From Macrostomum lignano (Eukaryota): 64,000 bases of DNA. Below, one piece after another: positions 23,003 to 59,078 of the stretch. The translations under genes were made by a program, and so were the position numbers. The stretch lies in NCBI GenBank assembly GCA_002269645.1, contig NIVC01002307.1:1-64000 (forward strand). The letters are read 5' to 3'. The notes below the pieces were generated by a model, which had not been told where the DNA came from, did not search any database, and was given only the letters and a program-made list of their open reading frames with translations. Positions within the stretch are counted from its first letter, which is position 1, and each line of letters opens with the position of its first letter.

Positions 23003-23038
<36 letters not shown>

Positions 23039-26000: not shown

Positions 26001-26592
26001 CGCTACAACCTACCGCTCGAACCTACCGCTCCAACCTACCGCTACAATCTACCGCTCAAAACTACCGCTCCAACCTACTGCTCCAACCTACCGCTTCAAT
26101 CTACCGCTCAAAACTACCGCTTCAATCTACCGCTCCAAACTACCGCTTCACTCTATTGCTATAACTACCGCTTCAATCTACGCTCCAACCTACCGCTTCA
26201 ATCTACCGCTACAACCTACCGCTTCACTCAATTGCTATAACTACCGCTTCACTCTACCGCTCTTCCCTACCACTCCAACCTACCACCAGATCTACTGCCA
26301 GACGCCCGCCTACGATTGGTCGGCCTTCCGCCGCTACCGGCAATTCCACGAGTCGCACGAATCGCTGTGCCAGCTCTACCCGGACATTGCCGACTTCTAT
26401 TTCCCGCCGAAGGTGGCCAACAGTCTTCGGGAAGAGGTGGCCAAGCAGAGAATGCGAGCGCTGCAGACTTACCTTCGCGATGTTGTTAACTACCTGTGCG
26501 CCAAGGTGCCGGGCGTCACACAGGAGCACCAGCTGCGGCAGCACCTGCCCCTGCTGCTTGACAGAGAGAGCCTGGTGTCCCGGACGGATTGA
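21543..26592 (+). CDS. SNX29: Sorting nexin-29 (RUN, coiled coil, PX), 577 aa
   Basis: Exons 21543-21661, 22910-23542, 24732-25068, 25469-25810, 26290-26592 total 1734 nt in frame. Motifs: AVKACQRRFGGRRELAS, RAWLRERINEASLERF, AAGVNSILFA, VVSFDDDD, LAEMHADL, VWIVGAFKRG...HHVYQ, RRYRQFH....YP......FPPK. Confidence 0.95.
21673..22826. repeat. 23-bp minisatellite (gagatctatcggattcagtcact) x~50, SNX29 intron 1
   Basis: Direct reading; it fills almost the whole intron. Confidence 0.95.
23560..24700. repeat. 27/33-bp minisatellite (gggatttgatcccagtgttattggctt), SNX29 intron 2
   Basis: Direct reading; the 33-bp variant dominates the 3' half. Confidence 0.95.
25160..25435. repeat. 21-bp minisatellite (gggatctttagactcgaatat), SNX29 intron 3
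   Basis: Degenerate at the 5' end, homogeneous at the 3' end. Confidence 0.85.
25845..26285. repeat. ~13-bp minisatellite (ctaccgctccaac), SNX29 intron 4
   Basis: Runs up to the acceptor at 26289. Confidence 0.9.
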
Positions 26593-26699
26593 CTGAGCAA
26601 TAACCAGGCTGCTCATCTTCTGTCCCGCTTTTTATTCTGTTTGAGGCATGGGCGTTGCCAGGGGGTGAACGAGGGGGCACTGACCCTTCTTAGTTTGCT

Positions 26700-27660
26700 G
26701 GCATCCCTCCAATCAAGTCAAACGGCACTTCCATCAAATCAAATGGCACTTCCATCAAATCAAATGGCACTCCTATCAAATCAAGTGGCACTCCCATCAA
26801 ATCAAATGACACTCCGATCAAATCAAGTGACACTCCCATCAAATCAAATGGCACTTCCATCAAATCAAATGGCACTTCCATAAAATCAAATGGCACTTCC
26901 ATAAAATCAAATGGCACTTCCATCAAATCAAATGGCACTCCTATCATATCAAATGGCACTCCCGTCAAATCAAATGGCACTCCCGTCAAATGAAATGGCA
27001 CTCCCGTCAAATCAAGTGACACTACTATCAAATCAAATAGCACCCAATCAAATCAAATGGCACCCAATCAAATCAAATGGCACTCCCATCAAATCAAACG
27101 GCACTCCAATCAAATCAAATGGCACTCCAATCAAATCAAATGGCACTTCCATCAAATCAAATGGCACTTCCATCAAATCAAATGGCACTCCTATCAAATC
27201 AAGTGGCACTCCCATCAAATCAAATGGCACTCCGATCAAATCAAGTGGCACTCCCATCAAATCAAATGGCACTTCCATCAAATCAAATGGCACTTCCATC
27301 AAATCAAATGGCACTTCCATAAAATCAAATGGCACTTCCATAAAATCAAATGGCACTTCCATCAAATCAAATGGCACTCCTATCATATCAAATGGCACTC
27401 CCGTCAAATCAAATGGCACTCCCGTCAAATCAAGTGACACTACTATCAAATCAAATAGCACCCAATCAAATCAAATGGCACCCAATCAAATCAAATGGCA
27501 CTCCCATCAAATCAAACGGCACTCCAATCAAATCAAATGGCACTCCAATCAAATCAAATGGCACTTCCATCAAATCAAATGGCACTCCTATCATATCAAA
27601 TGGCACTCCCGTCAAATCAAGTGGCACTCCCATCAAATCAAATCAAATGGCACTCCCGTC
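26700..27660. repeat. 21-bp minisatellite (aatcaaatggcactcccatca)
   Basis: About 45 units, with an internal ~420-bp higher-order duplication (marker gtgacactactatc near 27015 and 27433). Confidence 0.95.
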
Positions 27661-28094: not shown

Positions 28095-28700
28095 CACCCT
28101 CTCCTCTCCCTTGCTTCCCCTCTCCTCTCCTCTCCTCTCCTCTCTTCTCCTCTCCTCCCTTCTCCTCTCCTCTCCTCTCTTCTTTTCTCCTCTCCTCTCT
28201 TCTCCTCTCTTCTCTCTCCTCTCCTCTCCCCACCTCTCCTCTCTTCTCCTCTCTTCTCTCTCCTATCCTCTCCCCACCTCTCCTCTCTTCTCCTCTCTTC
28301 TCTCTCCTATCCTCTCCCCACCTCTCCTCTCTTCTCCTCTCTTCTCTCTCCTATCCTCTCCCCACCTCTCCTCTCTTCTCCTCTCTTCTCTCTCCTCTCC
28401 TCTCCCCTCCCCTCCTCTCTTCTCCTCTCTTCTCTCTCCTCTCCTCTCCCCTCCTCTCCTCTCTTCTCCTCTCCTCTCTTCTACTCTCTTCTCTTCTCTC
28501 CTCTCCTCTCTTCTCTTCTCTCCTCTCCTCTCCTCTCCTCTCTTCTCCTCTCCTTTCCTCTCCTCTCCTCTCTTCTCCTCTCTTCTCTTCTCTCCTCTCC
28601 TCTCCTCTCTTCTCTCCTCTCCTCTCTTCTCTCCTCTCCTCTCCTCTTCATCTCTCCCCTCTCTAGCTACTCCCTCCATCTCCTCTCCCCTCATTCGGAC
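28095..28700. repeat. Polypyrimidine (CTCTC/CCTCT) low-complexity tract
   Basis: Almost exclusively C/T for about 600 bp. Confidence 0.92.
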
Positions 28701-30909: not shown

Positions 30910-32904
30910 TCAACCAAGCAGCTCTGGCTTGACGGTACCAGCTATGTCGCTGGTTGAACCGCCGGCTACAGCAGCCGATGCGGCCGCAGCCGCCGCCACG
31001 ATGTCCCGCGGCCAGCGAAGCCCCGGATGCGACTGCTGCTGCTGCTGTTGCTGGTGTTGCGGCTGCTGCTGCTGCTGTTGTTGTTGTTGTTGATGCCGGC
31101 CCCGCTGGGTCACCTGGTCAATGGGCCTACGGGAACGGTCTGACTGCAACATGGCACAGCCAGCCGTCAATGCCCCGCTCACCATAGGACAGGGGCCTTG
31201 CACCACCGCGTCGCCGCGTGAGTGTGCAGAGGGCATGTCGGTGAGCCTGCCACCAGGTCCACCAGGGTCAACCCCAGCAGAGGGGCCGGAATTCCAGCTT
31301 TCGTGTCCGTGGCCAACGGACCTTCCACCCCACGCCTGACAGTCCAGCACTGGCGGCCAGCCCCGATGGGGTCTAGCCAGTGTCTGGAGCTGCTCGGAGG
31401 CCTGCTGGATGTGAGGCTGCTGCTGCTGCTGCGACATCTGCTGCGACTGCGCTGACTGCTGGGCCGCCGCTGAGTATGAGCGATGATGATAAGTCGGAGC
31501 TGCCGCGGCCGAAGCTGGCATTGGCTGAGCAATGCCGCCGTACTGCTGGTTGTACCAGTGCGCCATCGTGGTGTACGCGGCCGCCTGCTGCTGGCTGCTG
31601 TGCGCGGCGAGCAGCCAGTCGGTGTAGGCGGCGGCCGACTGCTGCTGGTGGTAGCGGGCCAGATCGCCCTCCAGGCCGCTGGCCATCTGCAGATTCTGCA
31701 ACAGGCCGGCGAAGTCGAATCTGTAAGCGTAGCGCTTGCCGTGCACTTTAGTGAGGATGTTCTTGTCGTAATAGTAGCGCAGCGCCCTGCTCAGCTTGTC
31801 GTAGTTCATGTTGGGCTTGGACTTCCTGGCGCCCCATTTGCGGGCCACCTCCTCGGGGTCGACGATTTTGAACTCGCCGTTGGGGCTCTCCCAGGCGATG
31901 ATCTTGCTCTGGCCGCTGTCGGACAGCAGCTCAAGGAGGAATTGCCACAGTTGCACCTGCCCCGAGCCTGCGGATGCAAGTAGGATTATGGGAACTGAGC
32001 CATGACAACTAATACAGAAGGTTGCTACACTCGCAACTTGGTTCAAATTGCTGAGCGTCAGACAACGTCACAGGGTGCGTTTCAGGGCCTGCTGGTGCGA
32101 ACGTAGGCCGCACCACCGGCAGAGTCCGGGGCGCCAGCATCAGCCAGCAAGAAGTCGACGAAACACCGAGTGCGCGCCTGCTCCGGCTGCGGGCAGTTGC
32201 GACTTGGCTCGGATGATGTGGCCTGGCAGCTGGAGTCTCCGCCGAGGCCCTGACGGGCAGGTGACGAAGCTTCCGCGCTGTCAGCAGTTCGTCTACCTCG
32301 GCGGTCTGGGGCCTGACGTTCTCGAGGATCTGCGACATCGCCGAGGACTTGCCTGGGCTGCCTTTCGCTCCGTGACGGCTGTCCTGCAGTCTGAGGCCCT
32401 GTCTGACCGCCAGAGGGCGGCGTTGTTTCAGGCGGTGATCGAGACCGTCCTGTTGTACAACGCCGAGACCTGGACTCTTGGGAGCCTCGCTCGAACAGCA
32501 GGTCGATGCGACACACGCTGGCCTGCTGCGCGCCGCCTTCAAGATCGGCTATGAGCGAGTCACCAATGCGGCGCTCTATCGCCGCAGTGGCCTGTCCCGT
32601 CCCAGCAAAATTTCGCCTTCCGAACTTCCGAAATTCCAAATCGAGCAATTTCATGCACTTTCAAACATGAACTTGATACTATCGACTGGATAGACTTTCT
32701 AAAGCCCTCACTTTTATATTTTAGTCCGGAATTAATTTTTTCTTTGAATAAAGTTTACTTCTTTCTTAAAAAACTAAAGGTCCCGAACAGGTCTTCAATT
32801 ATGAATTGAACTTCAAGGAAATTCCTTCTACAGATAGGCAAAAGTCTCACCTGCAGTAGCCAGCTTCTTAGCCAACGGTCCCAGAATGTGGTAGGGATCA
32901 ACCA
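30910..32904 (-). CDS. ERG-class ETS transcription factor unit B (Ets21C/FEV-like divergent paralog); 5' exons uncertain
   Basis: Exon 32904-32851 ([18 protein letters not shown]) splices in phase 1 to terminal exon 31967-30910 ([16 protein letters not shown]...[36 protein letters not shown]), followed by a Q/A-rich tail. Confidence 0.92.
32050..32606. mobile_element. Truncated RTE-like non-LTR retrotransposon with internal inversion, in ETS-B intron
   Basis: + strand 32246-32606 encodes the RT C-terminus (FVYLGG...AWAAFRSV...[19 protein letters not shown]...LLRAAF...[16 protein letters not shown], one frameshift near 32478). - strand 32244-32068 encodes the continuation [13 protein letters not shown]...[15 protein letters not shown]...ALKRTL*. 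Confidence 0.85.
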
Positions 32905-33874
32905 CTGAAATTGAAACAGAAGTTCAAGAAACAGAAGAAGCCTTAAAATGCACTGGGCGTGTGTCTGTCTATGCATTACAACCGGAAACGGGTCTCACTG
33001 TGCGTGTCGCGCCAATAATAGTTGAACTCCATGCCGAGCTTGCGGTAAATTCCTTTTGTCCTGAGCCGAAGCACAACGAGATAGGAAAGTTGAGCTTTGG
33101 AGCCTTGATGATCTCTTTGAGAAGGGAGAGGATGAGGCGTTAAAGAAGTAGGAAGGAGTCTGGGGTGGCTGCTGCCGCTGGGGGGAAGGAAGCTCGGCCG
33201 GCAGGCCCTGAGTAGCGCCATTTTATACAGGTAGTGAGGCATTTGATGTGATTTGCGCCGAAAATTTACATGCCGACACAGTTGAGTTGGCATTGAAATT
33301 CGCCTCTCGTATCTGCCCAGCCCCCCTCCCCCCGGCCCCAGCCTGTTTATGTAAATCGCATTAGAGACACCCCGCAATTAACGGCCAGGCTGTCGGGTCA
33401 ACAAGATTTCCCTAACCTGGCTTGGCCCGCCAAGCGGCATAATTCAATACCCAGAGCGCGCAGTCGGGTGTTGATTAGGCCCCCGCCCGCGAGGCTGGCT
33501 GCGGCGGGCAGAATCTGGGAGCCGCCAGCTTGATTTCTGAGCCCATTGATGCGGCTAATGATCGCGTCATTGTGGCTCGAGTCCCGCCTGTCCTAACCGA
33601 ATCACCGGCTCAGGGGCCGGGGCTCGGTGCGGAGACTGCGCAGTGATGATGAGCGGAGTTGAGCAGGGGGTGCTGGCGCCGCTCACTCTGGCATACCAAG
33701 TAGGAAGTTCTGGGAAATATGCAGGGAAACCCGTGCCTTCCTCTCCTGCTGGCTTCCCCAGCCTGCAGAAACTGGAGCTGGAAAACTTGGAGCCCGAGAC
33801 AGCTTTTTCTGCCATTTTGTGTCAGAAATAAACCATAGAATACAGCTAGGCGTTGGCATGCTCCCGTTGGCGCC

Positions 33875-34730
33875 TAACTATAAGTGCCTTTCCTCAGTTG
33901 GCGCCAAACGCCGAGTGTACTTATTCAGTTGGCGCCAAACAACGCTCGTATAAGTGTCCATCCTCAGTTGTCGCCAAATTATAAGTGTCCATCCTCAGTT
34001 GTCGCCAAATTATAAGTGTCCACCCTCAGTTGTCGCCAAATTATAAGTGTCCATCCTCAGTTGGCGCCAAATTATAAGTGTCCATCCTCCGATGGCGCCA
34101 AATTATAAGTGTCCATCCTCCGTTGTCGCCAAACTATAAGTGTCCATCCTCCGATGGCGCCAAATTATAAGTGTCCATCCTCAGTTGTCGCCAAATTATG
34201 TGTCCATCCTCAGTTGGCGCCAAATTATAAGTGTCCATCCTCCGATGGCGCCAAATTATAAGTGTCCATCCTCAGTTGTCGCCAAATTATAAGTGTCCAT
34301 CCTCCGTTGTCGCCAAATTATAAGTGTCCATCCTCAGATGGCGCCAAATTATAAGTGTCCATCCTCAGTTGGCGCCAAATTATGTGTCCATCCTCAGTTG
34401 GCGCCAAATTATAAGTGTCCATCCTCCGATGGCGGTCAAACTATAAGTGTCCTTCCTCCGTTGTCGCCAAACTATAAGTGTCCTTCCTCAGATGGCGCCA
34501 AACTATAAGAGTGTCCTTCCTCTATTAGCACACCAAACTATAAGTGTCCTTACTCCATTAGCGCTAACCTATAAGAGTTTTTCCTCCATTAGCGCCAAAC
34601 TATAAGAGTTTTTCCTCCATTAGCGCCAAACTATAGGTGTCTTTCCTCAGTTGGTGCCGACCTATAAGAGTCCTTCCTCCATCAGCGCCAAACTATAGGT
34701 GTCTTTCCTCCGTTGACGCCAAACGTGTTG
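33875..34730. repeat. 31-bp minisatellite (ttggcgccaaattataagtgtccatcctcag) x~27
   Basis: Direct reading; the unit carries the palindromes TTGGCGCCAA and TTATAA. Confidence 0.93.
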
Positions 34731-36711
34731 CGTAGCGCCAAGCTTCATCAAGATGTCAGTGGGCGCTAAACGGGTTGTCAGGAGTGTGCTAAACTGGATT
34801 TCAGTCGTGTTCTGAATCGTCAGATGCGTCTTTTTGGTTTTTTTAAATAAAATTTTCTGTCCATTTTCGCATTCGATACTACTCTAGCACTCATTTCGAA
34901 GTAGTCGTGCGAGGATTTTAACTTTATTTTTTGTTTTCTCCGTAGCTGAGAAGGATTAAAAGAAGTTCGGCATGCATTCAGTTGCCTACTGAGCTGTATT
35001 TTAGATCTGAATTAAGTAGTCTGTGGATTTGTCGTTAGACCTCCAAAAAAGCAGCAAAACGGTAGCTATAGAAGCAGAGCAGAGAGGAGGCCATAGTGGC
35101 AAGTGATTGATGAAAGAGAGGGCTGGTGCGTGACCCCCTGTCCCTTTTCTTATTTGCTGCTGCCCCCCCTCACTCACTCACTCACTCTCGCTCTGTCTCT
35201 GTCCCATGGCGAGCGGGCGGGTCACGCTACATTTTCATGCGACCGTCACGGTGAATTAATGTCAACCAAAACTGCCGCATGCCGCCGGCCGTGTCAGCCA
35301 TTGGGAGGCCAATGCTCCCCGGTCCCTCAGGCTGCAGCAGCGCACGGCCGAGCTGACAGAGCCAACAGACTCCTCTGATGAAGCTTGCATTGTGAGCTCT
35401 GACTATCACTGAGTCACGAACTTATGTTGGCCTGGCTTCTGCCCGGCTGACACCTCATGGTGAGAATAAGGACGGCCTATCTATTGTTCGCCAAGTTATT
35501 CAGAGACTATCTGCCGGCCGTATGGAGATCTATATTTTAGTTTTGAGTTTAGAGCAGCCCCCCCCCCAGCAGAGCCCAGTGCGCATCAATCACAGCCGCC
35601 ATCCAGCCCGAGTCGAATGGCGATTTCAACACATTTTTTGCGCGGACTGGGCCCACATTAGCTGGGGATTGAGAAATAAAAGAGAGACAGACAGCCAGAT
35701 TGGGGGTTCGGATCTGGGCCTGCGGGAAGGGAAACTATGGCGGTGGCTGATTGACTGGTGCCGCCGGCGCAGCGGCCTCCCAGGCTCACCCTAAGCTCGA
35801 CATCGTCGGTGAATGAGGGTCGATGAGGCTGGGGGCTCGGGAGGCTAGGGGCGCACGGAATGACATTTTTGTGGGGCACTCTCTCCCCAGAGTGAGTTTT
35901 TGCATTGATTGAATCGCTGGGCTAGCTTTTATATAATATTATAATACTGTGTGCGCGGCCGGCCAATTTCGATCACCTGGCCGCCAAGCCTCTAATGGAC
36001 ACTTGACTGGATTATGGCCGCTGCCTGTCCCGCTCCCCCCACAGCTTTTATAAGTTTATATTGGGAGTCTGCTGCTGGCTTTGCTTTTGCTATAAGCCTT
36101 ATATATCTATATATATATATAGATCTGCTCCTGTGAGCAATATTTCACCAATATGCTGAGGGACGGGAATGGCTTCGGGCAGGGATTTCAGATGCCGGCA
36201 CCCTAACCTGGCCCCCCCCCTCCCACCTCGACCTCCGCGGTGGAGAGACCAGCAGTTACCGGCAGTTAGGGGACGAGATTGAGAGCCCGGGCTAAAGCAG
36301 CCGCTCCCCATCAAGTCCGAACGATAAAATATATACATAGTTGCGGCAGCAGAGAGCGGAGTGCCGGGCAACCGTTCATTGTCAAATCCTGCCGCTTCTA
36401 GCACACTTGTTCAGCTCTCAGCGTCATCTTCTGCATTCTTTCCAGCTTAGAGGGGAGGCCCAGGACTTTGCTCAATTCTCCCATCATCCCCTCTTCCCCG
36501 GTCACTCCACGGCTTCAGAGATCGGAGGGGAGGCTGCGACACACCGGATGGGGAAGCCGCCGATCGCAGGAAGTTCCCAAAATCTGCCGCATCCTGCGGT
36601 ATTTCCTGCTTCCGCTTGGGCAACAGCCGCAGCAGGGCGGCTCAGGCTGTCATGGTGCTCATCCTGCTCAAATTAGGAGGGCGGATCATTCGTGCTGAAC
36701 AGTTTTTTTAC

Positions 36712-36763
36712 CTGGGCTGTGTGGATTGTGTGAAAGCATGTCACCGGGGCGCTTCATCATTTC
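36712..36763 (-). CDS. Candidate first coding exon of ETS unit B (MMKRPGDMLSHNPHSP)
   Basis: CAG acceptor, ATG at 36760, phase-1 donor CAG|gtaaaa compatible with exon 32904. No homology support. Confidence 0.35.
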
Positions 36764-36884
36764 CTGCGATCAGTTTGCTTCAAGCTCAAGCCGCAAGAAA
36801 TTGATGCTGATATGGGCTTCCGACCCTGTCGGAATGGCGTTGAGTTGAAACACAATGAGTGTCAGGAATGAGACAGATTCACCT

Positions 36885-37369
<485 letters not shown>

Positions 37370-40300
37370 CATTTAACACACAGGTTACACTACATACCTT
37401 ATTGCTCGAAAATTTACCCAAAAGTGTTGACACCCACCCCCGGGGTCCCAACAATGGGTACTGACAATGAACTGCAGCGGAAGTTTGCATGCTATTCCGT
37501 TGTGTTAAAGTTTTTTTCTATACTAAAGAAATTTCTGCAACTGCGGAAGTTTCATTGTGTGTCAGTTTCAAAAGGAGGAGCTGTGGATGCAGTGGGAAGA
37601 CCAGAAAAAGCTCAGCTTCCGCGAGGATCAGTGGAGAAGGGCTAGGCTCATTGGGATTATGCTACAGTTTTTCATTGAATTCTCGGGGTCGCTTCTTTCA
37701 ACCGGCGCAGCAATAAAATGCGATCAATGCTGTCTGGCTGTCAGCAGCCCAGGTACGCATTCAATGGCTTGTACGTGTGCTGGAAATTAATTTTTTTGCA
37801 CAGACACTCAGAGCTAGACCAGCTCAGTTCTCAGTCAACTGAAGCGGGGGGAAGATGCCCCACCTCCAGTGCTGATGACCCTCGCACCTCTCATCCCCTC
37901 TCAGCCTCTCCCGCCACCTCTTGAGTCCCATTAGGGTTTGAAGGAGGCCACTTCTGAAAGTCACTCGGAGGTGTGGGTCGAGCAGGCTCCAACTAACCGG
38001 TATAGGAATACTTTTGAGCAGCAGATAAAAGGTTGGCCGGGTTTGATGGTGAACGGGACAGTCGGACATTGCCTACTCTGTATATACTGCTCACAGACTG
38101 GGGCAGCGGTTTTAGAGAAGTTTTTCAATTGCCGAGTTCTCGGAGAGTAGTGGACCGCCGGACCCACTCCAGCTCGGCGGGCACGTGTCAGTGTGACGCC
38201 TCCCCCTGCGACTGTTTCTAAAATCCACCAATTCACCCCTCTCCCGGAATCCAGCATCCTTATACTGCGTCATCATTTTGAGTCTCGTTGAGGAGAACTA
38301 TTCTCCGTTTACCCCCTGAGGCGATTTCCCCTAATTCTTGCCTCATCATCGATAATATCCTTCATCTCGGGCGTCGGGCATGCGGAAAATTCTATTAAAC
38401 TTGGACAACTCCAAGCTCGCGCCCCTATTATCCATCTGTGATCAAGGCGTACAGGTGTCTGAGCTCAACCATTCTGCCTTGGAGATCTCAATCCTGACAG
38501 TAACTCTCTTAAGCTTTAGCGGGCCATCTGCAATTTGAGGAGCTGGGGTGGTTGGGGCGGGGTGGGTAATTCCTCCCCCCACTGCCAATTTGCTGAATTC
38601 TTTGCAAAAGAAATTTTCTCTTTCACGGATTCAGAAGCAGCTCTTGTCAAGCAAAAGAATTTGTCCGCGCAATTAGCTGCCTCGGGAGCGCCGTCTCCAG
38701 GCCTAATTACAGCGATAAGTCACCTGGGCGGAGGGGAGGGGATTCCGAGGCTAATCAGCTTTTGAAAATTGCGCCAAAGCTCAAGGATGAAGGGTAATAA
38801 ACATCCTCTTCAGGGGAAATGAGGCACCGTTTCGACTGGGCGAGTCTCTTTGTCCTCCCATCGGCTTTGATTTGCAGATTGGGACGGGGGGAAGTCCGCC
38901 AGGCGGCGGCTCCTTGAAGCCGAAGCTCTCGGTCGAGTAGCCGCGCAGCTCTCCGAGTTGTCCGCAGAAAAACAGGATGAGAAATATTTCCTGAAAACTC
39001 TCCCCTCTCTCTCTCTGTGAGTTAATTAGATCTTCCTGGTGAGCTGTTCAAAGGGAACTTCCTGACCGGTATTTTTCCAGCAGACAAAGGTGGCGAGACA
39101 GGCTGCTGTTCTTAAAAATTCAGTAGAGAGAAGAAATGTTGCCCTGAGAATCAATCAAGCAGTTGCTGACGTCCAGGTTACTGCGGAGACAATTGTGCGT
39201 TCTTTTTGAATAAATTAAAACTTCAGTTTGCGAGCCTCTTAATCCCAGGCTGGTGTCTGGCAGTCACGCGGCGGGCACTTTAGCTCAGCTGACTGAGTGA
39301 GACGCTGAGCTTTGCAGGCTGCCCCATCTGTTGCTGTTACCTGAATTCAGCCTTATAGCTGGGACGATAAACCCAATGAAAACTTGACCGGCCCCTCCTT
39401 ATCTCTCCAGAATTTCTATGCCAACTAGTGGAGGGGATTAAAACAAACACTCGACAGTCTGGCGGCCTCGGCTCGATCTGCGAGTCGTATATGGCTCTCT
39501 CAGTTTCTTTCTTAACCTTTTGCTCGATCGCTCGTTCGGCGGTCAGGCTGGCTGGCAACTGTTTTTAATAATAAAAACTGACTAGAAACCCCCCCCCCCC
39601 CCCAGTCCTGTAGCCGGCTTCCGCCCGCTTCTCAAATGTCGTCCATTGTCCATTATTGCCTCTCGCCCCATCATTTATCTGTCCAGTTGCTGTTCCCCCC
39701 ATTCCATTCCTCCGAGCCCTACTTGACCCCGAATAGCGTGTCCGGTTGCCGTGGCGATTTGCATAAATTATGCATATTCGTCGCTTTGACGTCGCGAAGG
39801 CGAGCGACGAAGAAGGGGAAATATTTTCGCTTCAACCGCCAGTCCTTGGCCTCTCATTTCCTCTGTTTCTTTCTCTCTCGCTACCCGCCACCCTCTCCGT
39901 CTCTGCCTTCTCTAATGCGCCCGCCGCCGGCAACTCGCTCGCTGATGGACAGGACCTGGTCTACAGGATTCCATGATCCCCATGCCTCGCAGACAATGGC
40001 CGAGCGAACCTACAAACAGGAAGTCGTCCAACTCTCTCCCTCCCATTGTCTGCGGCTGTGAGGCCTTGCCTGCCTGTTGTGTCATTGTTATTGTTTGAAA
40101 AAAAACCTGGGTATGGTTGGGAAGGGGGGTGTTTTGTGAGGAGTTTTCTCCCCACCATCCCGCCAACCCCAGGCTGAGGGATGAAGAAAAACTGTCAGCA
40201 TCGGAAGCGCTTCGGCAACCCCTTCTTCATCCTGCGGTGGCTCAGAGTCTGCTTTTTGTCTTCTAAGCTGGAATGCTGAGCTGGGTGAGTTTTTCTCCAG

Positions 40301-40719
40301 CTACTGACGCCGAGGGTCAACTAGCAGCCTCTTCTACCCGTTAAAACCATTCGGAGTCCTTCTTAGCCTACTCAAGCCTCGGAGCCGAGTCCACTTCATC
40401 GCCACTTGAAACAACTCAAGAGGCTGGGATGCCACGAGGCCGGTCTAAGGAAGGAAGGAAATGGGGGATGCAGTGAAAAAACTGCAGACCGATCTGTTGC
40501 TTCTGCAGACTCTGTGGCCATTGTGCGAGTCGGCTGGGTCTTGTGCCGATCAAGATGGCGGGCTGCCTGTCTGTTTTGTTGGCTGCAATTTTTTTCGATG
40601 AAACACATGCAAGTTTTTTTAATAGTGCGAGTATCATAAGTTTCGTGCTTAGGAATATGGAAATATCAATTAATTGGTGGGAGAATATTGTGTACAGAAA
40701 ATGAAGGATTCTGAGAGAT

Positions 40720-41705
40720 AGGGAGAGACGCAGAGATGCGGAGAGACGGGGAGAGACGGGGAGAGACGGGGAGAGGCGGGGAGAGATGGGGAGAGACGGG
40801 GAGAGACGGGGAGCCGGTGAGAGACGGGGGAGATGCGGAGAGACAGTGAGAGATGGGGAGAAACGGAGAGACGGGGAGAGACTGGGAGAGACTGAAAGAG
40901 ACGGGGAGAGACGGGGAGAGACGGGGAGAGACGGATAGAGACGGAGAGAGACGGATAGAGACGGATAGAGACGGATAGAGACGGATAGAGACGGGGAGAG
41001 ACGGATAGAGACGGGCAGAGATGGGGAGGGACGAGAAGAGACGGATAGAGACGGATAGAGACGGATAGAGACGGGGAGAGACGGATAGAGACGGGGAGAG
41101 ACGGATAGAGACGGGGAGAGACGGATAGAGACGGGGAGAGACGGATAGAGACGGAGAGAGACGGATAGAGACGGATAGAGACGGATAGAGACGGATAGAG
41201 ACGGGGAGAGACGGATAGAGACGGTGAGAGACGGGGAGAGATGGATAGAGACGGGCAGAGATGGGGAGGGACGAGAAGAGACGGATAGAGACGGATAGAG
41301 ATGGGGAGAGACGGGGAGAGACGGATAGAGACGGGGAGAGACGGATAGAGACGGGGAGAGACGGATAGAGACGGAGAGAGACGGATAGAGACGGATAGAG
41401 ACGGGCAGAGATGGGGAGGGACAAGAAGAGACGGATAGAGACGGATAGAGATGGGGAGAGACGGGGAGAGACGGATAGAGACGGGGAGAGACGGGGAGAG
41501 ACGGGGAGAGATGGGGAGGGACGAGAAGAGACGGATAGAGACGGATAGAGATGGGGAGAGACGGGGAGAGACGGATAGAGACGGGGAGAGACGGGGAGAG
41601 ACGGATAGAGACGGGGAGAGACGGGGAGAGACGGGGAGAGACGGAGAGAGACGGGGACAGACGGGGAGAGACGGGGAGAGACGTGGAGAGACGGGGAGAG
41701 ACGGG
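40720..41705. repeat. Purine-rich 10-bp satellite (gacggggaga/gacggataga) with higher-order blocks
   Basis: 10-bp period; the marker gacgggcagagatggggagggacgagaaga recurs. Confidence 0.93.
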
Positions 41706-42464
41706 GAGAATGCAGTAGGATAGAGATGAGACACGCTCCGAACAGCCGTGCAACAAAGACTCAAACAGGCATGAAACGGAGACCGAGCTTCAGAGCCCAA
41801 AGCCAGTGACGCAGCCGCCGCAGCCGCCGCCACTTCTGCCGCCATCAATTTCTCGCTTAGCCCCGCTTGCCGGCTTTCGCAGCCATTGTTTCCAGCCACA
41901 CTCGAAGGCTGGATTTGAAATTGTTCGCCGAGACGCTCTCTGAAGCGCAAGGGATTCGACACGCGTGTCGTATCCGGCCGAGACCGATTAAAGAGGGGGG
42001 GGGGCTTGGCTGTTTCGGGGATATTTTGCCTCTTCATGTTTTAAAAACGTTGCGATCCTCACTGACTGACTGACTGATCCCATTGAATGGAGCGTATACA
42101 GCCTGGGAGCTCTTGGGATTCAAGCGAACTGAGGATAATTCGATGGGATTGGAGTGTTGTTTAGAGTAATTAGCCTGCTAGCCTGGGTGCGAGGCCTCGA
42201 TCCCCCCTGAGCCCAGTTCTCGCCAGCCAAGCCCATGGCACAGCTTCGCGACACGGCAGAGTGGCATTGCCAGACACTTGGCTGGCAACAGGTGCAGCCT
42301 CTGATGGAGATTGGGGTGAGTCTGCGCGTCTGTCTGAGCAACAGCGAGTCTCTTGTTGTTTCAATGGAGCGAGGGAGTCAAGCAGCTCAAGAACTGATGC
42401 AGAGGGGAGACAGCAGAAGTCACCTGCTTTCTCTTGACGCCACCGCGCACGGAGATCTTGAACC

Positions 42465-42862
42465 AGAATATGGAGTGACAAGTAGACTCTGAGTATATGG
42501 AATGACAAGTAGACTGAGAATATATGGAGTGACAAGCAGACTCAGAATATATGGAGTGACAAGCAGACTCAGAATATATGGAGTGACAAGCAGACTCAGA
42601 ATATATGGAGTGACAAGCAGACTCGGAATATGGAGTGACGAGTAGATTCGGAATATATGGAGTGACGAGTAGACTGAGAATATATGGAGTGACAAGTAGA
42701 CTGAGAATATATGGAGTGACAAGCAGACTCAGAATATATGGAGTGACAAGCAGACTCGGAATATGGAGTGACGAGTAGATTCGGAATATATGGAGTGACG
42801 AGTAGACTGAGAATATATGGAGTGACGAGTAGACTCGGAATATATGGAGTGACAAGCAGACT
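42465..42862. repeat. 27-bp minisatellite (gaatatatggagtgacaagcagactca)
   Basis: About 15 units. Confidence 0.92.
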
Positions 42863-43551
42863 TAGTAAACTAACAAGTCTGAATAAAAATTGAAGCGAAT
42901 TTTGCCAAAAAACGAAAAGCATTGACAAATTGGCCAGTGTGTGGCGTTGCATTAGTTATTGATTTATATTGCCAATCACAAATACCGTACTGATGCTCGC
43001 GCACATTTAATTACAGCTATATATTCATTGATCAGGCAGGTAGGTTACTCCTACCAGCCCATCTGTATTTACACGAGAGTCGCAATGGGAGACACTGGGC
43101 GAGGGTTCATTGGTTTCCACGAGACGGTCACAACAGGTCCGCAAGCTCAGTGGTGGGCAAAGCAAGCAGAAATTGAACTCCTATTGAAAAAAAACAATTA
43201 AATATGATAATTCCACGATGGTCAGTGAGGGGTCACAAAACTAAAGCACAGACACTGGACCTTCTTGTGATTGTCGAATTTCAGAACTCCCGACCCGACT
43301 CATTCTGTATATCAGTAAGCACTGTTGGGGACAAGAAGTGTCAGCTACTGATCCAGACAGGAGCTCAAGAGACCAGGACAAGACAGATGGAAAAGGACAA
43401 AAAGCATTCACTTGACTACAGGTAAGCAAAGTACTGCACACAATTTAGTAAATAAGATAAGGTAAGCAGCGAATTTTCAAGGTTGAAAACGATTAATTTG
43501 TCTCTCTCTGTCTGTCTGTGTGTCAATCCAATTGTGGGGCCAGCCGCTGCC

Positions 43552-46500
43552 TCAGTTGTAATAGTGCGCGCTGGGCAGGTGTGAGCTGGCTGTATGGCTC
43601 GGCATGTTTGAGTACAGGGAGCCGGCGGCTGGCGGCGGAGGCGGCGGCGGAATGTTGGGATAGATTGAGCCGCCGCTAGGCTGCGGACTCCAATAGTGAT
43701 GATGCGGAGCGGAGGCTGGAAACAGTCCGTTGCCAGGCGGCGGTCCGGCCATAGCAACGGCGCTGTGCATCTGGGCGTTCATCAGGTTGAACTTTGAGTT
43801 GGCGGCCGTGAAGTAGCCGGAGCTGAGCAGGTCCTGCTGGTACTGGTACTTGTAAGCGGCCGGGTCAGCTGTTGCCGGCTGCATGGCCTGAGCCAGGCCG
43901 GCAAAGTCGAACTTGTAGGCGTAGCGCTTGCCGTGCACCTTGGACATGATGTTCTTGTCGTAATAGTAGCGCAGCGCCCTGCTCAGCTTGTCGTAGTTCA
44001 TGTTGGGCTTGGACTTGCGCTCGCCCCAGCGTCTGGCCACCTCGTCCGGGTCGGACAGCTTGAACTCGCCGTTGGTGCCCTCCCAGATGATGCAGCTGGA
44101 GTTGCGGCTGTCCGACAGCAGCTCCAGCAGGAACTGCCACAGCTGGATCTGACCGGATCCTGGCGGAGGTTCAGTGAAGACAATAAATTTTTATGATGCT
44201 TAATTAATCCAATTGAAATCATTAGTGAACAATGCCGGACCCGCATGCCAATTCTGATGCAGCTGATCTTTCAAACTGATTCGGCCAATTAGACCAGCTT
44301 CACTGTTGGTCCCTCCTTGTGACGGCAAAGCGGAGCCCGAGGAAATGAGGGCTGGGGGCAGCAGCCCGAGAGAAAACAATGGGGCCTCGCGGAAGATCAA
44401 CAGAAAAAAGAAGCGGAACTCTCCAAAGCCAACAATGCGAGGAGGCTGAAGTGAGCAACAGGATGAAGCGGGGGAATTGCCAGAAAACTTCATGGAAAGA
44501 AGCGGAAGCCGTCTGGAAGCAGAGGCTGGGCGCAACGCGTTGAGGAAGCAAATTTTGAATCCTCCGCCTTGAGTTTCTGGCGCCCCCACCACCCCTGGGA
44601 TCAAGTGAGCAGCAGACAGCGAGAGGCTCAGGATGGGAAAGAGATTGAGGGTTGCAGGAGAGGCGAAAAGAAGCGAGAGGGAAATCGGGATTTACTCTGG
44701 CTAACAAACTCCCAACGATCTTGCGCGCTGGGTCAACACTCGGCCTACCAGAGTCCTCTGCTGCCCCCCCCTGTTTGCCCAGTTTGCCGATTCGGGGCCT
44801 GAAAGACTGCAGGACTCAGCAAGAGATAGAAGAGATGAACTGGGTGGGGGGACAGAAAATCAGGGTAGTCGCGCTTTTGGTCCGCACGCTGCTGCTGCTG
44901 CTGCTGCTGGAGTCTCTCTTCTAGAGGACACTATGCAGTCCCGCTGGCCTGTCTATATATCACTGGCGCTGGTACCAGCTAATCCTGTACAGGTCAGTGA
45001 GTGGATTATGGCAAGTGCTCCTGAGAGTAAAACTCTTCTGATTTTGTCTCCCTCTCCTCCCGCGATGGGACAGTAAAACCTGAATCAAGCCATGAGCCAT
45101 CGCGGCCATGAAAATGAAATTATTGTCCAAATCTGTCCGTCCAAAGGCACTAATTACAAGGTGGAAGATGATGCTTGGAACGCGAGGGGGCCATCGAATG
45201 TCTTGTTTATGACCGACCGATTGCCCAGCCGAGCACAACTGCGGACTCCTCGCTTTCCGCTTTCGCAATATTGCTGAGCATGCTGCTCCTGCTGGCTTTC
45301 ATAATATATTGCATAGGCCCTATTGAAATTACCCTGTGATATTTACGAGGCTGACAGATCTGAAATCGTGGCAGGGGGACTCCGACAGCAAGTCGAATTA
45401 GCTGCAGAGGATAGCCGAGCTGGAGAAGAAAGGGAAAGTAAGGCGTAGAGGTCACGAACTCGAGCCTCACGCACCAGCCTCACACCAACCCCCCCCCTCC
45501 CCTGTTGCGCGCGCGCGGGCGCCCTCCAGGTGGCGCGGTAGGCGGCTTGAAGGCACGAGGCTCAGGGCCTTGGCGCGGGTTTCGGCACGCCCACCAGCAA
45601 AAATGAAGCGACGAGGAGGCTCCTCCCTAGTCAGTCTCCCACTTAAGTCCGGGTCATCCGCTCCGCCTTGTCCCGTTTCTTGTGCGCCCTTCTCGTAAGG
45701 GTGACGCCAACTAAAACTCTCACAATCGAGCTGTTTGACACTCTGAAACCCTGTCCTGAGTTCTTGTTGTTGCTGTAGGAGTCAGTGAGTCCTCTTTGTT
45801 TAAACCCCTCAGCCATTGCTGGCTTCCATAACCCGAAACGGGGCACCATGCGGCACAGATCGGCTCCATCGTGCCGCTGAGCTCAGCAAGAGCCTGGATT
45901 TCGCCCCGCGATCACGCAACAGCGAGGTCGATAAGTGCTTGGGGTCTTCCCTGCCAGTGTGTTTTTGTGTTCGCCTTCTTGAGGCTTTGTTTTAAAGAAA
46001 CAAACACAAGCTGATGGTGAAACATCTGAATTATCTATACAGATATAGATAGGGGATGTCAATTAGGGGATCGGGCAATAGGCCTTGGTTACTCCAGCAG
46101 CCACTTTGTCTTCCCTAACCCCACCGATGCCTTGGAAACACTTGTCACCCGCTGTTAATGCTCGCCCAGCGGGAGGGGCCATTAAATTTCTGTATAGCCA
46201 TGAAAAAAAAAGAAATAAAAAGATATATCCGGGCGGGGATGGAGAAATGCCATCATTTTGAGCTTTCTCGCCGTCACAGCACACAAAAAGGACCAAACGG
46301 AGCCGATGTTATTTATTCGGCTCATTTAAAATCTCCAAGAATAAAGAAACGGAGACTAAAGATATGAATAAGGCAGCACAATTGAATTTCTAGACCAACT
46401 GAAAGTTGAATGATGATGGCTCGGCAGGCATTGCTGTGTAGTAAGTAAATGGCCAGAGCAATAAGTCAAATGAGATTTTTTCTAACCCCGTGCCAGGCGT

Positions 46501-49500
46501 TTGTTAATGAATTTTTCATGTTTTTGTCGCAAGATTCTCGGCCTCGATTAGAAGGGGGAGGGGGTTGTCAGAGGCCGATCGGGAGGGAAAGAGTTCGGGA
46601 CCGTCCCTGAGTCAGTCACTGAGTTGCTTTTTCATGGCCAGGCTCAAGCCGAGCTGTCAGCCGAGGTCTCTGCTTGCAGATATATGAGAATTGTTTAATG
46701 ACAGAATCTTCTTTTAGCCACGGCTATAATACGGATCTCAAGGCAAAGAAACACTGGGCAGGAAAAGCAGCAATTTATCTTGATCGGCTCGTCTGCTCGT
46801 CATTAAGTCTCCCCCCTCCTCCCTCTTCTCCGATCCCCGCTACCGATGTTTGGGAGAAAAACAAAGTTGACCACAGCAGGACGTCCAACTCAGGGCGGCC
46901 CTGAGCTGCTCTGATTAAGTGAATTGCGTGTCAGCAGAGGACCTGAAATTCTCTGCCGTTCTATACTAACGTATGTCTCGATTGATGCGCCTGTCTGTCT
47001 GCCTGCCCCGGGATCAGAGGTAATCTAGGTTTATAGAATGGGGATGGGGCAGATCGGGATGATTGAAAAAATCTGCCACAATTTCAGCTCTTCACTCAGA
47101 AAAAAGATTGCCCCTCATTGAGGAACCTGGCTGGGACCCCCCGCGGAGGATTATGAAGAGCCTCATCCAGCAAGAGTTTCACCTGCAGTCTCGGGACTCA
47201 AGGCTGAATCGCTCTTCATCGAGTGGGAGTGGAGAAGTGGCTGCTTTTGAGGCTCCCCGCCGGCCTGTGAGGGCAAACTTGCTGCGCACAAATCTGGGCG
47301 GGCCTGGCGGGTCCTTCAACATATGCCAGCATTCGCCCAGTCTGCTCCGAATATCAACTCTGCACCTTGTCGTGTTTTGCTTTCATGCTCAGAGATGACT
47401 GTGTCTCCAAGTCTTCCAGATCCTGAATCTCTCCAGATCCACAATCTCCCTAGATCCCGAATCTCCCGAGATCCAAAATCTCGCTATATCCCGAATCTCC
47501 CAGATCCCAAATCTCCCCAGATCCTGAATCTCTCCAGATCCACAATCTCCCTAGATCACAAATCTCCCCAGATCCAAAATCTCCCCAGATCCTGAATCTC
47601 CCTAGATCCCGAATCTCCCAGATCCCAAATCTCCCCAGATCCCAAACCTCACAGATCCCAAATCTTCCCAGATCCCAAATCTCTCCAGATCCAAAATCTC
47701 CCCAGATCCTGAATCTCCCCAGGTCCTGAATCTCTCTAGATCCCGAATCTCCCCAGATCCCGAATCTCCCAGATACCAAATCTCTCCAGATCCCAAAATC
47801 TCTCCAGATCCAAAATCTCCCCAGATCCTGAATCTCCCCAGGTCCTGAATCTCTCTAGATCCCGAATCTCCCCAGATCCCGAATCTCCCAGATCCCAAAT
47901 CTCTCCAGATCCCAAAATCTCTCCAGATCCCAAATCTCCCCAGATCCAAAATCTCCCTAGATCCCAAAATCTTATCAGAGCCCAAATCTCCCAGATCCTG
48001 AATCTCCCTAGATCCTGAATCTCTCTAGATCCCGAATCTCCCCAGATCCCAAACCTCACAGATCCCAAATCTTTCCAGATCCCGAATTTCCCCAGATTCC
48101 AAATCTCCCCAGATCCCGAATCTAACCAGATCCCAAAATCTCCCCAAATCCCATGCGAATTCCGTATAAGCATTCAGCAGCGAGTTGTAAATCTCACCTT
48201 GCGGTCTCCAGTGGGCCGGCTGGTTGCCGGCTCCTCCGCCGCCGCCGCCGCCGCCGCCACCGCCGCTACCGCCACCTCCGCCGCAGCCGCCGCTGATGCT
48301 GCCGCCGCCCTGCTCCTTCTGCTGAGTCGAGTAGGGAGTCAGCGATGAGGCCAGCGGGCTGCTGCCGTAGCCTGCAAGAGAAAGTCGAGCAGAGGTAGCC
48401 AGTTGCAGAGAACAGGAAATGGGAGCGCTGGGGCTATTTTGGAAATTTTCGAGCTAAAAGACGTGACTTTTTTGCTAGCCATTTTCACGCCTATAGAAAA
48501 CTTCTGTATTCAAATTTTGCAACTTTTTCCAACAGCTTCAGTTGCTATGAGGGCTCGAGAATGAAGTTTTTCCGCTTCAATAGCTGCTGATTTGGTTGTA
48601 TCTATGTACAATTGTATAATAGATGAGGCCAATTTAGCTCTTACCTGGAGTCGGGGTGCTCTGTCGGCCCCAGCCGGTTTTTGAGTAGGCGTTGTCTGGA
48701 ACAGTGCGGCATATTTAATAAAATTCGCATGAATCAAAGGGCTCCGTACTGAAAAAAAACTATTATATTTTCAGACCTATCGCTCTAATGCAGTCAATGT
48801 TAGCCTGCCCGAAATCTTGGCCACTGCAGTCAGCTCAGCGATAATTGCGCGCCTCCCAGATCCCTGCCACGCACAACCCCCATACCTGTCTTTTTTCTCC
48901 CAATATGCCTTTCTGACTCTCAACTCTCCCCCCCACCTACAGTCACTTCTCAAATCCCCTTCATCATCATCAGCACAGAAATTTTGAATGCGGGACGGCC
49001 AGCCAGGGAGAGAGATCGGGGCAGAGATGCGGGACCCGCCCGCTGCAGGCACTTGGCTGAGATTTCAGATTTCAGGACACACACAGCACACACACACAAG
49101 ATATTGAAGTTGAATAGGAAAGCTTTTTTTGCGAACCATTCTGCTGGCTGGCCAGTATTCAATAGAGGGAACAAGTTTGAGTTCTGTGCTCAGCTTTAGA
49201 AACTTTCATGCGGTTTTCCGCGTGCCGCGTTGAGTTGCCGCCACTCCCCCCAACCTCCGTCCCAGAATCTCTCCTCCATCTGCAGCCTCCTGGCCTCGCT
49301 TCATCCCACGCGCAGCTTCGCATTGTTGTGCCGACCGGTGTGGGGGGCCCCAGGCTTTGTATCGCACCTTCAACCAGGCCGCTCGGGCCAGTCCCGCCCC
49401 GGGGCAAAATGAGACCCGCTGCTGCTGCCGGAATGCTGAGGAACTGCTGTTTGGTCGAACGGAACGGTGCGGGCTGCTCCGCCACGACAGGAGTGGGAGA

Positions 49501-49876
49501 GTTGAAAACTGTTGGGAAAAATGAATTCGAGTTGCTAAGGCCCGCGCACCCCAATTCCCCATAAAAAATTCTGTTCAGAAAATTGTCAATAGCCAGAAAG
49601 CCACACACGCGCCAAGCAGTCACGCGATGCTGAATGAAGTTTTTTATCAATGGTTAATCGTGCAAAGCTGTTTAGAAAATGCTCGAAACTAAACTGCACT
49701 AAACTCTGCTGCTTAAACCCCTTTTTCATAGAAACAAAAAGGTTTGAAACATAAACAACCAACAGAAAAAAGCAAAAAAGCTCACCAGGAAACATGACCG
49801 GAGCCAGTGGCGCCCCAGCGGCCAGAGAGCATGCTCTGTAGTATTCTTCCTGCTTGATGTTTTGCATTGTCTGCAT
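43552..49876 (-). CDS. FLI1: FLI1/ERG (Ets65A-type) transcription factor, PNT-less model, 290 aa
   Basis: Exons 49876-49786 ([12 protein letters not shown]...), 48371-48198 (Gly-rich, ends HWRPQ) and 44159-43552 total 873 nt, all phase 1. The ETS domain is near-identical to ERG/FLI; the tail [13 protein letters not shown]...[14 protein letters not shown]...SHLPSAHYY is of ERG/FLI type. The ETS exon is near certain; the 5' exons are less so. Confidence 0.88.
47400..48150. repeat. 17-19-bp minisatellite (cccagatcccgaatctc)
   Basis: Direct reading; it ends about 45 bp from the donor at 48197. Confidence 0.92.
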
Positions 49877-50649
49877 TGTGCACTCCGATGGCTAAGAATT
49901 CACCTGTCTGTGAGGGTTTCGAGTTTGCTAAATTATCTGCTAAACAGGGCCGCTGCTGAGATTTATGGAACTGTTGCTGGGAGGCGAGAATCTCAATAAT
50001 CCAGACTTGAGGAGATGGCGGAGGTGGCAGCTTCCTTCCTAACGGGAGATTTCCTCGAGAATGTTTTTGAGTCGCTCCGGCCGCGCCAACCCCATCCGAC
50101 TTCTCCTGGCGGCAGCCCCTACCTCCCCGCCTTCTCACCCCACCCCTCTGCCCCCTTGCAATGCATTGGGCGACCTGTGACCAGCCTCCTGATGAAGAGC
50201 CTCCGGGGCGGCGCCGGACTCAAAGTCTCCAACCCTGCTCAGCCAATGGGAAGGAAGGAAGCTCGGATGACATTGGTCCGGAATAACCCCACCTTCCCGG
50301 GAAATGGGGAAGGAGATTTTCAGTCGCCAACACTACTCACTTCCCCCAGAAATCTCTCCTGTTTTCCCCTGCCCCCGAGAATTGCTGGGGATCTTTTGGC
50401 CTCTCTTGGCGTCTCTTGGATTGGAGGGAGCGCAGGCCGGGCTGCTGGTGCGGGTAGGAAAATAATGATGGGGCGAATTTGAGTCTGGACTTTGGGCGGA
50501 CTTCCTGGGGATGGATAATCCATGGCCTGAGTATTCCATGGATGACTTCTTGGCTTCTTGATCTTGATTTAGTCAGGTGTTCGAGTCTAATCATTTTTTA
50601 TTTGATGCAGCAATTTTGCATTGGTTCTAATTGGCTCCAGCCTTTGATT

Positions 50650-51670
50650 CCACAGGATGTCATTTTGGTTCCACAGGATGCCATTTTGGTTCCACATGAT
50701 GCCATTTCGGTTCCACTGGATGTCATTTTGGTTCATAGGGTGCCATTTTGGTTCATAGGGTGCCATTTTGGTTCATGGAGTGCCATTTTGGTTCATAGGG
50801 TGCCATTTAGGTTCATAGGGTGCCATTTTGGTTCATGGGGTGCCATTTTGGTTCCACAGGATGTCATTTTGGTTCCACAGGATGCTATTTTGGTTCCACT
50901 AGATGTCATTTTGGTTCCACAGGATGCTATTTTGGTTCCACAGGATGTCATTTTAGTTCCACAGGATGTCATTTTGGTTCCACAGGATGTAATTTTGGTT
51001 CCACAGGATGTAATTTTGGTTCCACAGGATGTCATTTTGGTTCCACAGGATGTAATTTTGGTTCCACAGGATGTCATTTTGGTTCCACAGGATGTCATTT
51101 TGGTTCCACAGGATGCCATTTTGGTTCCACAGGATGTCATTTTGGTTCCACAGGATGTCATTTTGGTTCCACAGGATGCCATTTTGGTTCCACAGGATGT
51201 CATTTTGGTTCCACAGGATGTCATTTTGGTTCCACAGGATGCCATTTTGGTTCCACAGGATGCCATTTTGGTTCCATTTTGGTTCATAGGGTGCCATTTT
51301 GGTTGATGGGGTGCCATTTTGATTCATAAAGTGCCATTTTATTCCACGGGGTGCCATTTTGGTTCATAAAGGCCATTTTGGTTCCATAAGGTGCCATTTT
51401 GGTTCCATAAGGTACATTTTTTCCATAAGGTACATTTAAGGTACATGAGGTGCATTTTGGTTCCAGAGGATGCCATTTGCATTTTGGTTCCAGAGGATGC
51501 CATTTGCATTTTGGTTCCAGAGGATGCCATTTGCATTTTGGTTCCAGAGGATGCCATGCTGGTTCTGCAGACTGCCATTTTGGTTTAGAGTGCCATTTTG
51601 GTTTAGAGTGCCATTTTGGTTTCAATAGGGCCATGTTGGTTCCAGAGGGTGCCATGTTGGTTCTATGGAA
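50650..51670. repeat. 21-bp minisatellite (ggttccacaggatgtcatttt / gggtgccattttggttcata)
   Basis: Direct reading; degenerate toward the 3' end. Confidence 0.93.

Positions 51671-59034: not shown

Positions 59035-59078
<44 letters not shown>

Follow-up and report, generated by a model that had tools for sequence, protein, structure and literature searches.

Two ETS domains of the ERG class are encoded on the minus strand of a contig of the flatworm Macrostomum lignano, and the question that this locus raises is whether they are alternative DNA-binding 3′ ends of a single gene or belong to two genes arranged in tandem. The stretch of DNA that was analysed, here called the window, comprises bases 1-64000 of contig NIVC01002307.1 (assembly GCA_002269645.1), and window coordinates equal contig coordinates. 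A sequence-only reading of the window had noted that an exon ending in RPQ is followed by the first of the ETS exons without the DPY micro-exon that stands between these segments in ERG/FLI proteins, and that the only DPY exon lies further downstream, before the second ETS exon. It had proposed that one promoter could choose between the two ETS ends, the alternative being two genes with reciprocal exon loss. The evidence presented here makes it probable that the locus holds two separate ERG/FLI/FEV-class paralogues in tandem on the same strand, namely gene A, which is canonical and annotated, and gene B, which is divergent and unannotated. The exons concerned and the repeat features within and between the two genes are the following.

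49876-49786, minus strand: A1, coding exon 1 of gene A; 91 nt with a phase-1 donor, with homology to the first exon of short spiralian ERG homologues
48695-48645, minus strand: A2, coding exon 2 of gene A; 51 nt, phase 1 at both ends, corresponding to the 'PDPSYGK..W.PQ' exon of the orthologues
48371-48198, minus strand: A3, the 'RPQ exon' of gene A (YGSSPL...poly-G...HWRPQ); 174 nt, phase 1 at both ends, donor CAAG/GTGAGA
44159-43552, minus strand: A4, terminal exon of gene A, with a canonical ERG-class ETS domain (Pfam Ets, 121.3 bits), a conserved C-terminal tail and a TGA stop
36760-36712, minus strand: B1, candidate first coding exon of gene B, MMKRPGDMLSHNPHSP; 49 nt, ATG at 36760, phase-1 donor CCAG/GTAAAA
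32904-32851, minus strand: DPY exon of gene B; 54 nt, phase 1 at both ends, acceptor tttcaatttcag, donor GCAG/GTGAGA
31967-30910, minus strand: terminal exon of gene B, with a divergent, intact ERG-class ETS domain (Pfam Ets, 119.7 bits), a new Q/A-rich tail and a TGA stop
47416-48153, no strand: 17-bp minisatellite in intron 3 of gene A
36884-42862: repeat-rich intergenic interval between A and B, with (TCTA)121 at 36884-37369, a 20-bp array at 40713-41709 and a 27/133-bp array at 42468-42862

All exons lie where the sequence-only reading had placed them, with the start codon of B1 refined to position 36760, and all exon boundaries of A and B are canonical AG/GT. Both ETS domains are complete, covering positions 1-80 of the 81 positions of Pfam profile PF00178 with scores of 121.3 (A) and 119.7 bits (B) at a cut-off of 26.9 bits. 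Among PDB entries, the B domain scored 193.7 bits against ERG (4irh), 192 against FLI1 and 165 against FEV, compared with 128 for ETS2 and 125 for ETS1; A and B belong to the ERG/FLI/FEV subfamily of ETS factors. Exon lengths bore out the claim that every junction of both genes is in phase 1.

Gene A (49876-43552) has four coding exons encoding 307 amino acids and corresponds exactly to the annotated products BOX15_Mlig011985g1/g2, and the part encoded by A4 is 100% identical to the hypothetical protein BOX15_Mlig011985g3. The M. lignano annotation was built from RNA-seq transcripts (PMC5730564), and since the annotated A protein uses the 48198/44159 junction, this junction has indirect transcript support. 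The top matches of A were all ERG homologues, and A is most closely related to the short 'ERG homolog' proteins that lack PNT and occur in nemerteans, molluscs, annelids and brachiopods, such as Tubulanus polymorphus P0016/P0033, Ostrea edulis P0048 and Haliotis P0037. A shares with this group the MQ.(M/I)KQ.(D/E)YYRAC first exon, the PD..Y.K exon, a WRPQ exon joined straight to GSGQIQLW, an ETS domain identical at 83-88 of 92 residues, a tail ending in ...SH(L)..YY, the number of four coding exons and the lack of a PNT domain. What sets A apart is a poly-Gly stretch inserted into exon 3 and a third intron that is 4 kb long and contains a minisatellite; otherwise it is ordinary. When the coding sequences of two copies of the locus were compared, all five nucleotide substitutions were silent, and the sole further difference was a 3-nt indel in the poly-G run. 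The match to the gene structure of the orthologues, the transcript-derived annotation and the silent nature of these substitutions show that A is a complete, canonical and constrained gene, and A is the orthologue, in the flatworm, of the 'transcriptional regulator ERG homolog' that is conserved in spiralians. The functional analogues of this short group are Ets65A/D-ETS-3 in Drosophila and FEV/Pet-1 in vertebrates.

The missing DPY exon of A had been the starting point for the idea of a shared gene. Within intron 3 of A (48197-44160), neither a DPY exon nor a remnant of one was detected by tblastn with the PAM30 matrix and 7 DPY peptides, by a regular-expression scan or by word-7 blastn, in agreement with the sequence-only reading; the sole 'DPY' string in this intron has stop codons on both flanks. 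We compared 20 spiralian proteins retrieved with the 'MQ..YYRAC' N-terminus and 87 retrieved PNT-type ERG/FLI proteins. In 19 of the 20 former proteins WRPQ is joined directly to GSGQIQLW, and only the Lingula protein has the DPY segment. At the gene level, two short genes of the nemertean Tubulanus (L005 and L007) consist of the same four coding exons as A, and their last intron is free of a DPY exon; a 6.2-kb contig of flatworm-like genomic DNA (L009) reads ...QKEQQNNQWRPQ, followed by a 3.8-kb intron without DPY and by an A-type ETS exon. The DPY segment is thus not a defining feature of the orthologue group of A, and its absence from A is, judging from these gene structures, not an anomaly and the normal state for the group.

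All 87 PNT-type proteins contain the DPY segment. In PNT-type genes the DPY exon stands close to the ETS exon, at a distance of about 0.6 kb in Lingula and about 0.1 kb in Tubulanus; in the window it lies 0.88 kb upstream of the ETS exon of B and 15.3 kb downstream of A3. From this spacing, the layout of the Lingula and Tubulanus PNT-type genes and the presence of the segment in all PNT-type proteins, it follows that the DPY exon belongs with gene B. The splice sites of both B exons are strong, on either side in the case of the DPY exon, and a phase-1 intron immediately precedes GSGQ(I/V) in A4 as well as in the ETS exon of B, the same boundary being found at the Lingula and Tubulanus loci. 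The peptide encoded by the DPY exon can be aligned with the stretch that precedes the ETS domain on its N-terminal side in the human ERG chains 4irh/4iri (4irh_A), which we take to be constructs made for studying ERG autoinhibition. This DPYQILGP...RLA segment is present in B and absent in A, so the ERG N-terminal flanking element is retained in B and not in A or in the orthologues of A.

The organization of B resembles that of the PNT-containing ERG/FLI genes (human ERG and FLI1, the Lingula 'Fli-1 homolog' P0123, Tubulanus P0127 and Drosophila Ets21C) in having a DPY(Q/H)(I/L)(L/F)GP micro-exon near the ETS exon and phase-1 junctions. It differs from them in that the window yielded for B neither a PNT domain nor 'PDP.Y.K' or 'WR.Q' exons, and in about 10 lineage-specific substitutions at otherwise invariant ETS sites and an unrelated C-terminal tail. 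For the PNT domain, tblastn with 7 PNT-containing queries against the 64-kb window gave no match, and a hidden Markov model of 86 PNT domains, run against the six-frame translation of the window, found no domain (best E-value, 4.3). The model of B is also similar to Helobdella robusta P0160 and to the nematode AST-1-like P0138/P0151, in which a few residues are followed by DPY..(L/F)GP....L...GSGQ.QLW and the ETS domain. Unlike B, these short proteins have kept a canonical ETS domain, and the Helobdella protein has also kept the canonical C-terminal end.

The variant residues and the poly-Q tail that the sequence-only reading had ascribed to B are present as described. No stop codon or frameshift occurs across 351 codons, and the GC content at third codon positions (GC3) of the ETS exon of B is 0.85-0.97, like that of A (A4, 0.85-0.97). 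Over 300 nt, A and B differ by 67 nucleotides, which change the amino acid in 25 of 100 codons, whereas random substitution would be expected to give 43±3 amino-acid changes, and none of 20,000 simulations yielded 25 or fewer. The corresponding rates are 0.21 nonsynonymous substitutions per nonsynonymous site (dN) and 0.49 synonymous substitutions per synonymous site (dS); the ETS domain of B has diverged from that of A under purifying selection. A and B are identical throughout residues 47-70, the recognition helix included, and where B departs from otherwise invariant positions the exchanges are for the most part conservative, for example I>V, D>E, M>L and K>R. The FDFAGL motif that follows the ETS domain of B is common to the spiralian sequences and to the crinoid Antedon in our sample.

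No in-frame ATG precedes the domain in the DPY and ETS exons of B, and its start codon must therefore come from a further exon upstream that ends in a phase-1 donor. The interval from the stop codon of A to the DPY exon was filtered for start exons with an ATG, an open frame, phase 1 and a donor score of at least 3.5, and a single locus passed, namely B1 with its ATG at 36760, 3.8 kb upstream of the DPY exon. An in-frame TGA lies four codons upstream of this ATG, and the (TCTA)121 array is situated directly upstream of the exon. The coding sequence of B1 is identical in a second copy of the locus, and one base differs 3 nt upstream of the ATG; the divergence between copies of about 0.2-1.5% outside repeats is too small for this identity to inform on B1. 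We consider B1 a plausible candidate for the first exon of B, predicted from exon signals. Scanning GC3 periodicity from 43.5 to 32 kb for overlooked coding exons gave nothing convincing, at low power given that the small exons of A have only moderate GC3 themselves, and no homologues of the A-type N-terminal exons were found upstream of B (43.5-32.9 kb).

The DNA similarity between A and B is confined to 276 bp of the ETS exon (83%), with none in introns or flanks, which indicates that the duplication is old and that each unit has evolved independently. Similar arrangements exist elsewhere. The two short genes of Tubulanus (L005 and L007, on OZ123228.1) are in tandem on one strand, about 34 kb apart, and each has its own first exon, and in Lingula the short and the PNT-type gene (L004 and L006, on LFEI02000090.1) are convergent and 19 kb apart, the DPY exon of the Lingula short gene following only about 100 bp after its RPQ exon. 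These linked ERG-class paralogues of other spiralians are clearly separate genes. In Drosophila, Ets65A and Ets21C are both FLI orthologues (PMC9802468).

On the reading that we favour, gene B (about 36760-30910) would be a fast-evolving paralogue that has kept the ancestral DPY micro-exon just before its own ETS exon and in which novel sequence would have replaced the conserved N-terminal exons and C-terminal tail. We infer from the window's sequence that B has a first exon, a promoter, expression and a function of its own. Both proteins would bind GGA(A/T) core sites through their identical recognition helix and would differ in their flanking regulatory and activation regions. The alternative that the sequence-only reading had allowed for, two genes with reciprocal exon loss, thus comes out in part: two tandem genes are favoured, and the loss or replacement of N-terminal exons in B is real, while the absence of DPY from A is common to most spiralian orthologues and so unrelated to this duplication. 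By its exons, A is a member of the spiralian short ERG group and B is not. Phylogenetic placement was tried for B and set aside, as its ETS domain is equidistant (70-75/92) from all ERG-class domains and, this domain being too conserved, does not separate a short-type from a PNT-type ancestry. B may have arisen from a PNT-type ERG/Fli gene after loss of the N-terminal exons, or from the duplication of an ancestral short gene in which DPY was still present, as it is in the short gene of Lingula.

Several observations weigh against two functional genes. The ETS domain of B is the most divergent of the ERG class in our sample, sharing 70-75 of 92 residues with each of the other sequences, compared with 83-88 of 92 among flatworm A, molluscs and mammals, and about 10 of its changes fall at positions that stay the same all the way from nematodes to mammals. 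The tail of B bears no relation to the conserved C-terminal tail, and the tails of A and B do not align. Codon periodicity in B is strong to about 31500-31400 and weak beyond, and since it fades past about 31400, the distal part of the 351-codon stretch, in the tail, may not be wholly coding. In a collection of 5.8 billion proteins, no protein was more than 77% identical to B, and exact look-ups of the B model and of an open reading frame (ORF)-style B fragment found neither in it. B is not annotated as an independent gene although the annotation is transcriptome-based; this is weak evidence given that the annotation is sparse here, the neighbouring Sox and RUN/PX models likewise having no annotated counterpart. 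In the annotation procedure, moreover, isoforms were discarded if they fell short of 75% of the major one, as were novel transcripts with less than 0.5 reads per kilobase per million mapped reads (PMC5730564), so that a minor A-B chimera could have been missed. As for B1, the background density of the window leads one to expect about 1-2 such ATG-plus-donor exons by chance per 10.65 kb, and if B1 were discounted, the exons of A would be the only known phase-compatible source of an ATG for B.

Some of these observations would also suit a silent or recently inactivated duplicate, in which the DPY and ETS exons are relics, the 5′ exons and the promoter have been lost and nothing is expressed. Such a relic would account for the absence of B from the transcriptome-based annotation and from all protein sources, for the lack of homologues of the conserved N-terminal exons and C-terminal tail, for the decay of coding periodicity in the distal tail and for the exceptional divergence of the domain at nematode-to-mammal invariant positions. 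We nevertheless judge it unlikely, because the ETS domain is of full length and scores on a par with that of A, the 351 codons are free of stops and frameshifts, GC3 has not decayed, the divergence between A and B is strongly biased against amino-acid change, and both the DPY and the ETS exon have strong splice sites; the annotation of the region is in any case sparse.

The proposal that started this analysis, a single transcription unit driven by the promoter of A, in which A3 is spliced either to A4 or, past the poly(A) site of A, to the DPY and ETS exons of B, appears very improbable. The join of 48198 to 32904 is in frame, as had been claimed, and with all junctions in phase 1 an A3-DPY chimera would indeed be translatable; this compatibility is inherited from common ancestry and would be found in any ERG-class duplicate, so it is no evidence of joint use. 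B lacks a proven first exon and an annotation of its own, and M. lignano is known to produce long multi-gene precursor transcripts (PMC5730564), all of which would be compatible with one promoter. The premise fails, however, since orthologues of A normally have no DPY exon, and with the orthologue comparison the argument from DPY absence is removed; no positive evidence was found for one promoter choosing between two ETS 3′ ends, and we give that claim very little credence. The annotated products at all three copies of the locus are A1-A4, and the exact A-B chimeric protein is absent from the protein collection, with the reservation that minor isoforms were filtered out by the annotation. The chimera would require an intron of 15.3 kb, compared with a species mean of 1.1-1.4 kb (PMC5730564), together with read-through of the terminal exon of A. 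Furthermore, the DPY exon adjoins the ETS exon of B, as in independent genes elsewhere, and a stand-alone candidate ATG exon is available in B1. It is accordingly hard to believe that B has no promoter of its own and is produced chiefly as a second 3′ end of A, spliced across 15 kb. The poly(A) hexamers, ATTAAA 540 nt past the stop codon of A and ATTAAA plus AATAAA 660-790 nt past that of B, are compatible with one gene as well as with two and do not discriminate between these models.

An A-B unit of this kind would resemble the Drosophila genes lola and mod(mdg4), in which a common 5′ part is combined with alternative 3′ exons encoding different DNA-binding domains, so that N-terminal exons are shared and the DNA-binding C-termini alternate. 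A and B differ from these genes in that there are only two ends, which are ordinary duplicated terminal exons of a family that often forms tandem paralogues, and the identity of their recognition helices suggests little change in DNA specificity. To our knowledge, a lola-like arrangement has not been described for ETS genes. Splicing from A to B, if it did occur, would provide a rare example of a single gene that exchanges entire DNA-binding domains, and with a shared promoter the locus would supply two ERG-class factors that have the N-terminus in common, differ in DNA-binding domain and tail, and either carry or lack the ERG-type segment that flanks the domain on its N-terminal side.

That A and B form an operon-like precursor, resolved by polyadenylation of A and spliced-leader trans-splicing just upstream of B1 so that one promoter serves two proteins, is scarcely credible, since, although multi-gene precursors make up about 7% of M. 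lignano transcripts and operons contain about 15% of the genes (PMC5730564, PMC8629364), A and B are on the same strand with no gene recognised between them, and an AG is present 3 nt upstream of the B1 ATG, the distance from the stop codon of A to B1 is 6.8 kb, or about 4.9 kb minus tandem repeats, where the operon threshold is at most 1 kb after repeat adjustment (PMC8629364), and the acceptor gatcgcag misfits the YTNCAG trans-splice motif (PMC8629364).

Two tandem genes therefore remain the probable answer to the question posed by the locus. Gene B would then be an unannotated and unusually divergent ERG-class paralogue that is missing from the Mlig_3_7 gene set of this regeneration model and merits addition to it. 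Together with the linked pairs of Lingula and Tubulanus, the locus shows the ERG-class family repeatedly forming linked paralogues in Spiralia, and the DPY micro-exon has been retained by one class of paralogues and lost by the other.

The A locus is present in triplicate within the Mlig_3_7 assembly, on NIVC01000364.1 (L001), NIVC01002307.1 (L002, the contig of the window) and NIVC01001207.1 (L003), which is consistent with the hidden polyploidy reported for M. lignano. The copies are about 99% identical outside repeats, with a divergence of about 0.2-1.5% in unique sequence, and differ mostly in minisatellites; at the protein level, the sole difference between g3 and g1/g2 is one glycine in the poly-G run. 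The comparison with L001 reaches window position 33583, short of the DPY and ETS exons of B, and L003 meets the end of its contig. At none of the three copies is another annotated gene listed within 10 kb of A. Scanning the 64-kb window for Rfam families and tRNAs gave no matches, and no papers on Mlig011985 were found in the literature.

The AG 3 nt upstream of the B1 ATG lies in the segment 36761-36766 of the window (23110-23115 in L001), and the M. lignano spliced leader ends in ATG. Speculatively, trans-splicing at B1 would place the leader ATG in frame in the window copy (GAA ATG ATG) and not in the sister copy (TAA ATG ATG).

Dense minisatellite and microsatellite arrays occupy 26707-27643, 28098-28663, 33866-34724, 36884-37369, 40713-41709, 42468-42862, 47416-48153 and 50643-51276, and these arrays generate long spurious ORFs. 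Among the neighbouring genes, a Sox-type HMG-box gene (58607-59922, minus strand; Pfam HMG_box, 75 bits) has two coding exons with a phase-1 intron inside the HMG box (...SRLLG/DKWKS...) and a long poly-Q stretch; its model is absent from the protein collection and not among the genes called near A. A RUN and PX domain gene of the SNX29 type (about 22800-26600, plus strand) is convergent with gene B and has introns full of minisatellites, and its sole database relative is a 79%-identical UniProt fragment from an older M. lignano annotation. Weak 'ETS-like' tblastn matches at 23145-23345 fall inside the RUN domain of this gene and were dismissed as chance. A 410-aa ORF at 11728-10499 (minus strand) has no Pfam match, and EF-hand-containing ORFs were seen at 16530-15150 (minus strand). 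The first part of the window, from position 1 to about 9000, belongs to a large lipid-transfer protein gene on the minus strand, with Vitellogenin_N and vitellinogen open beta-sheet domains and very long open exons (1010 aa and 709 aa), which extends beyond the start of the window.

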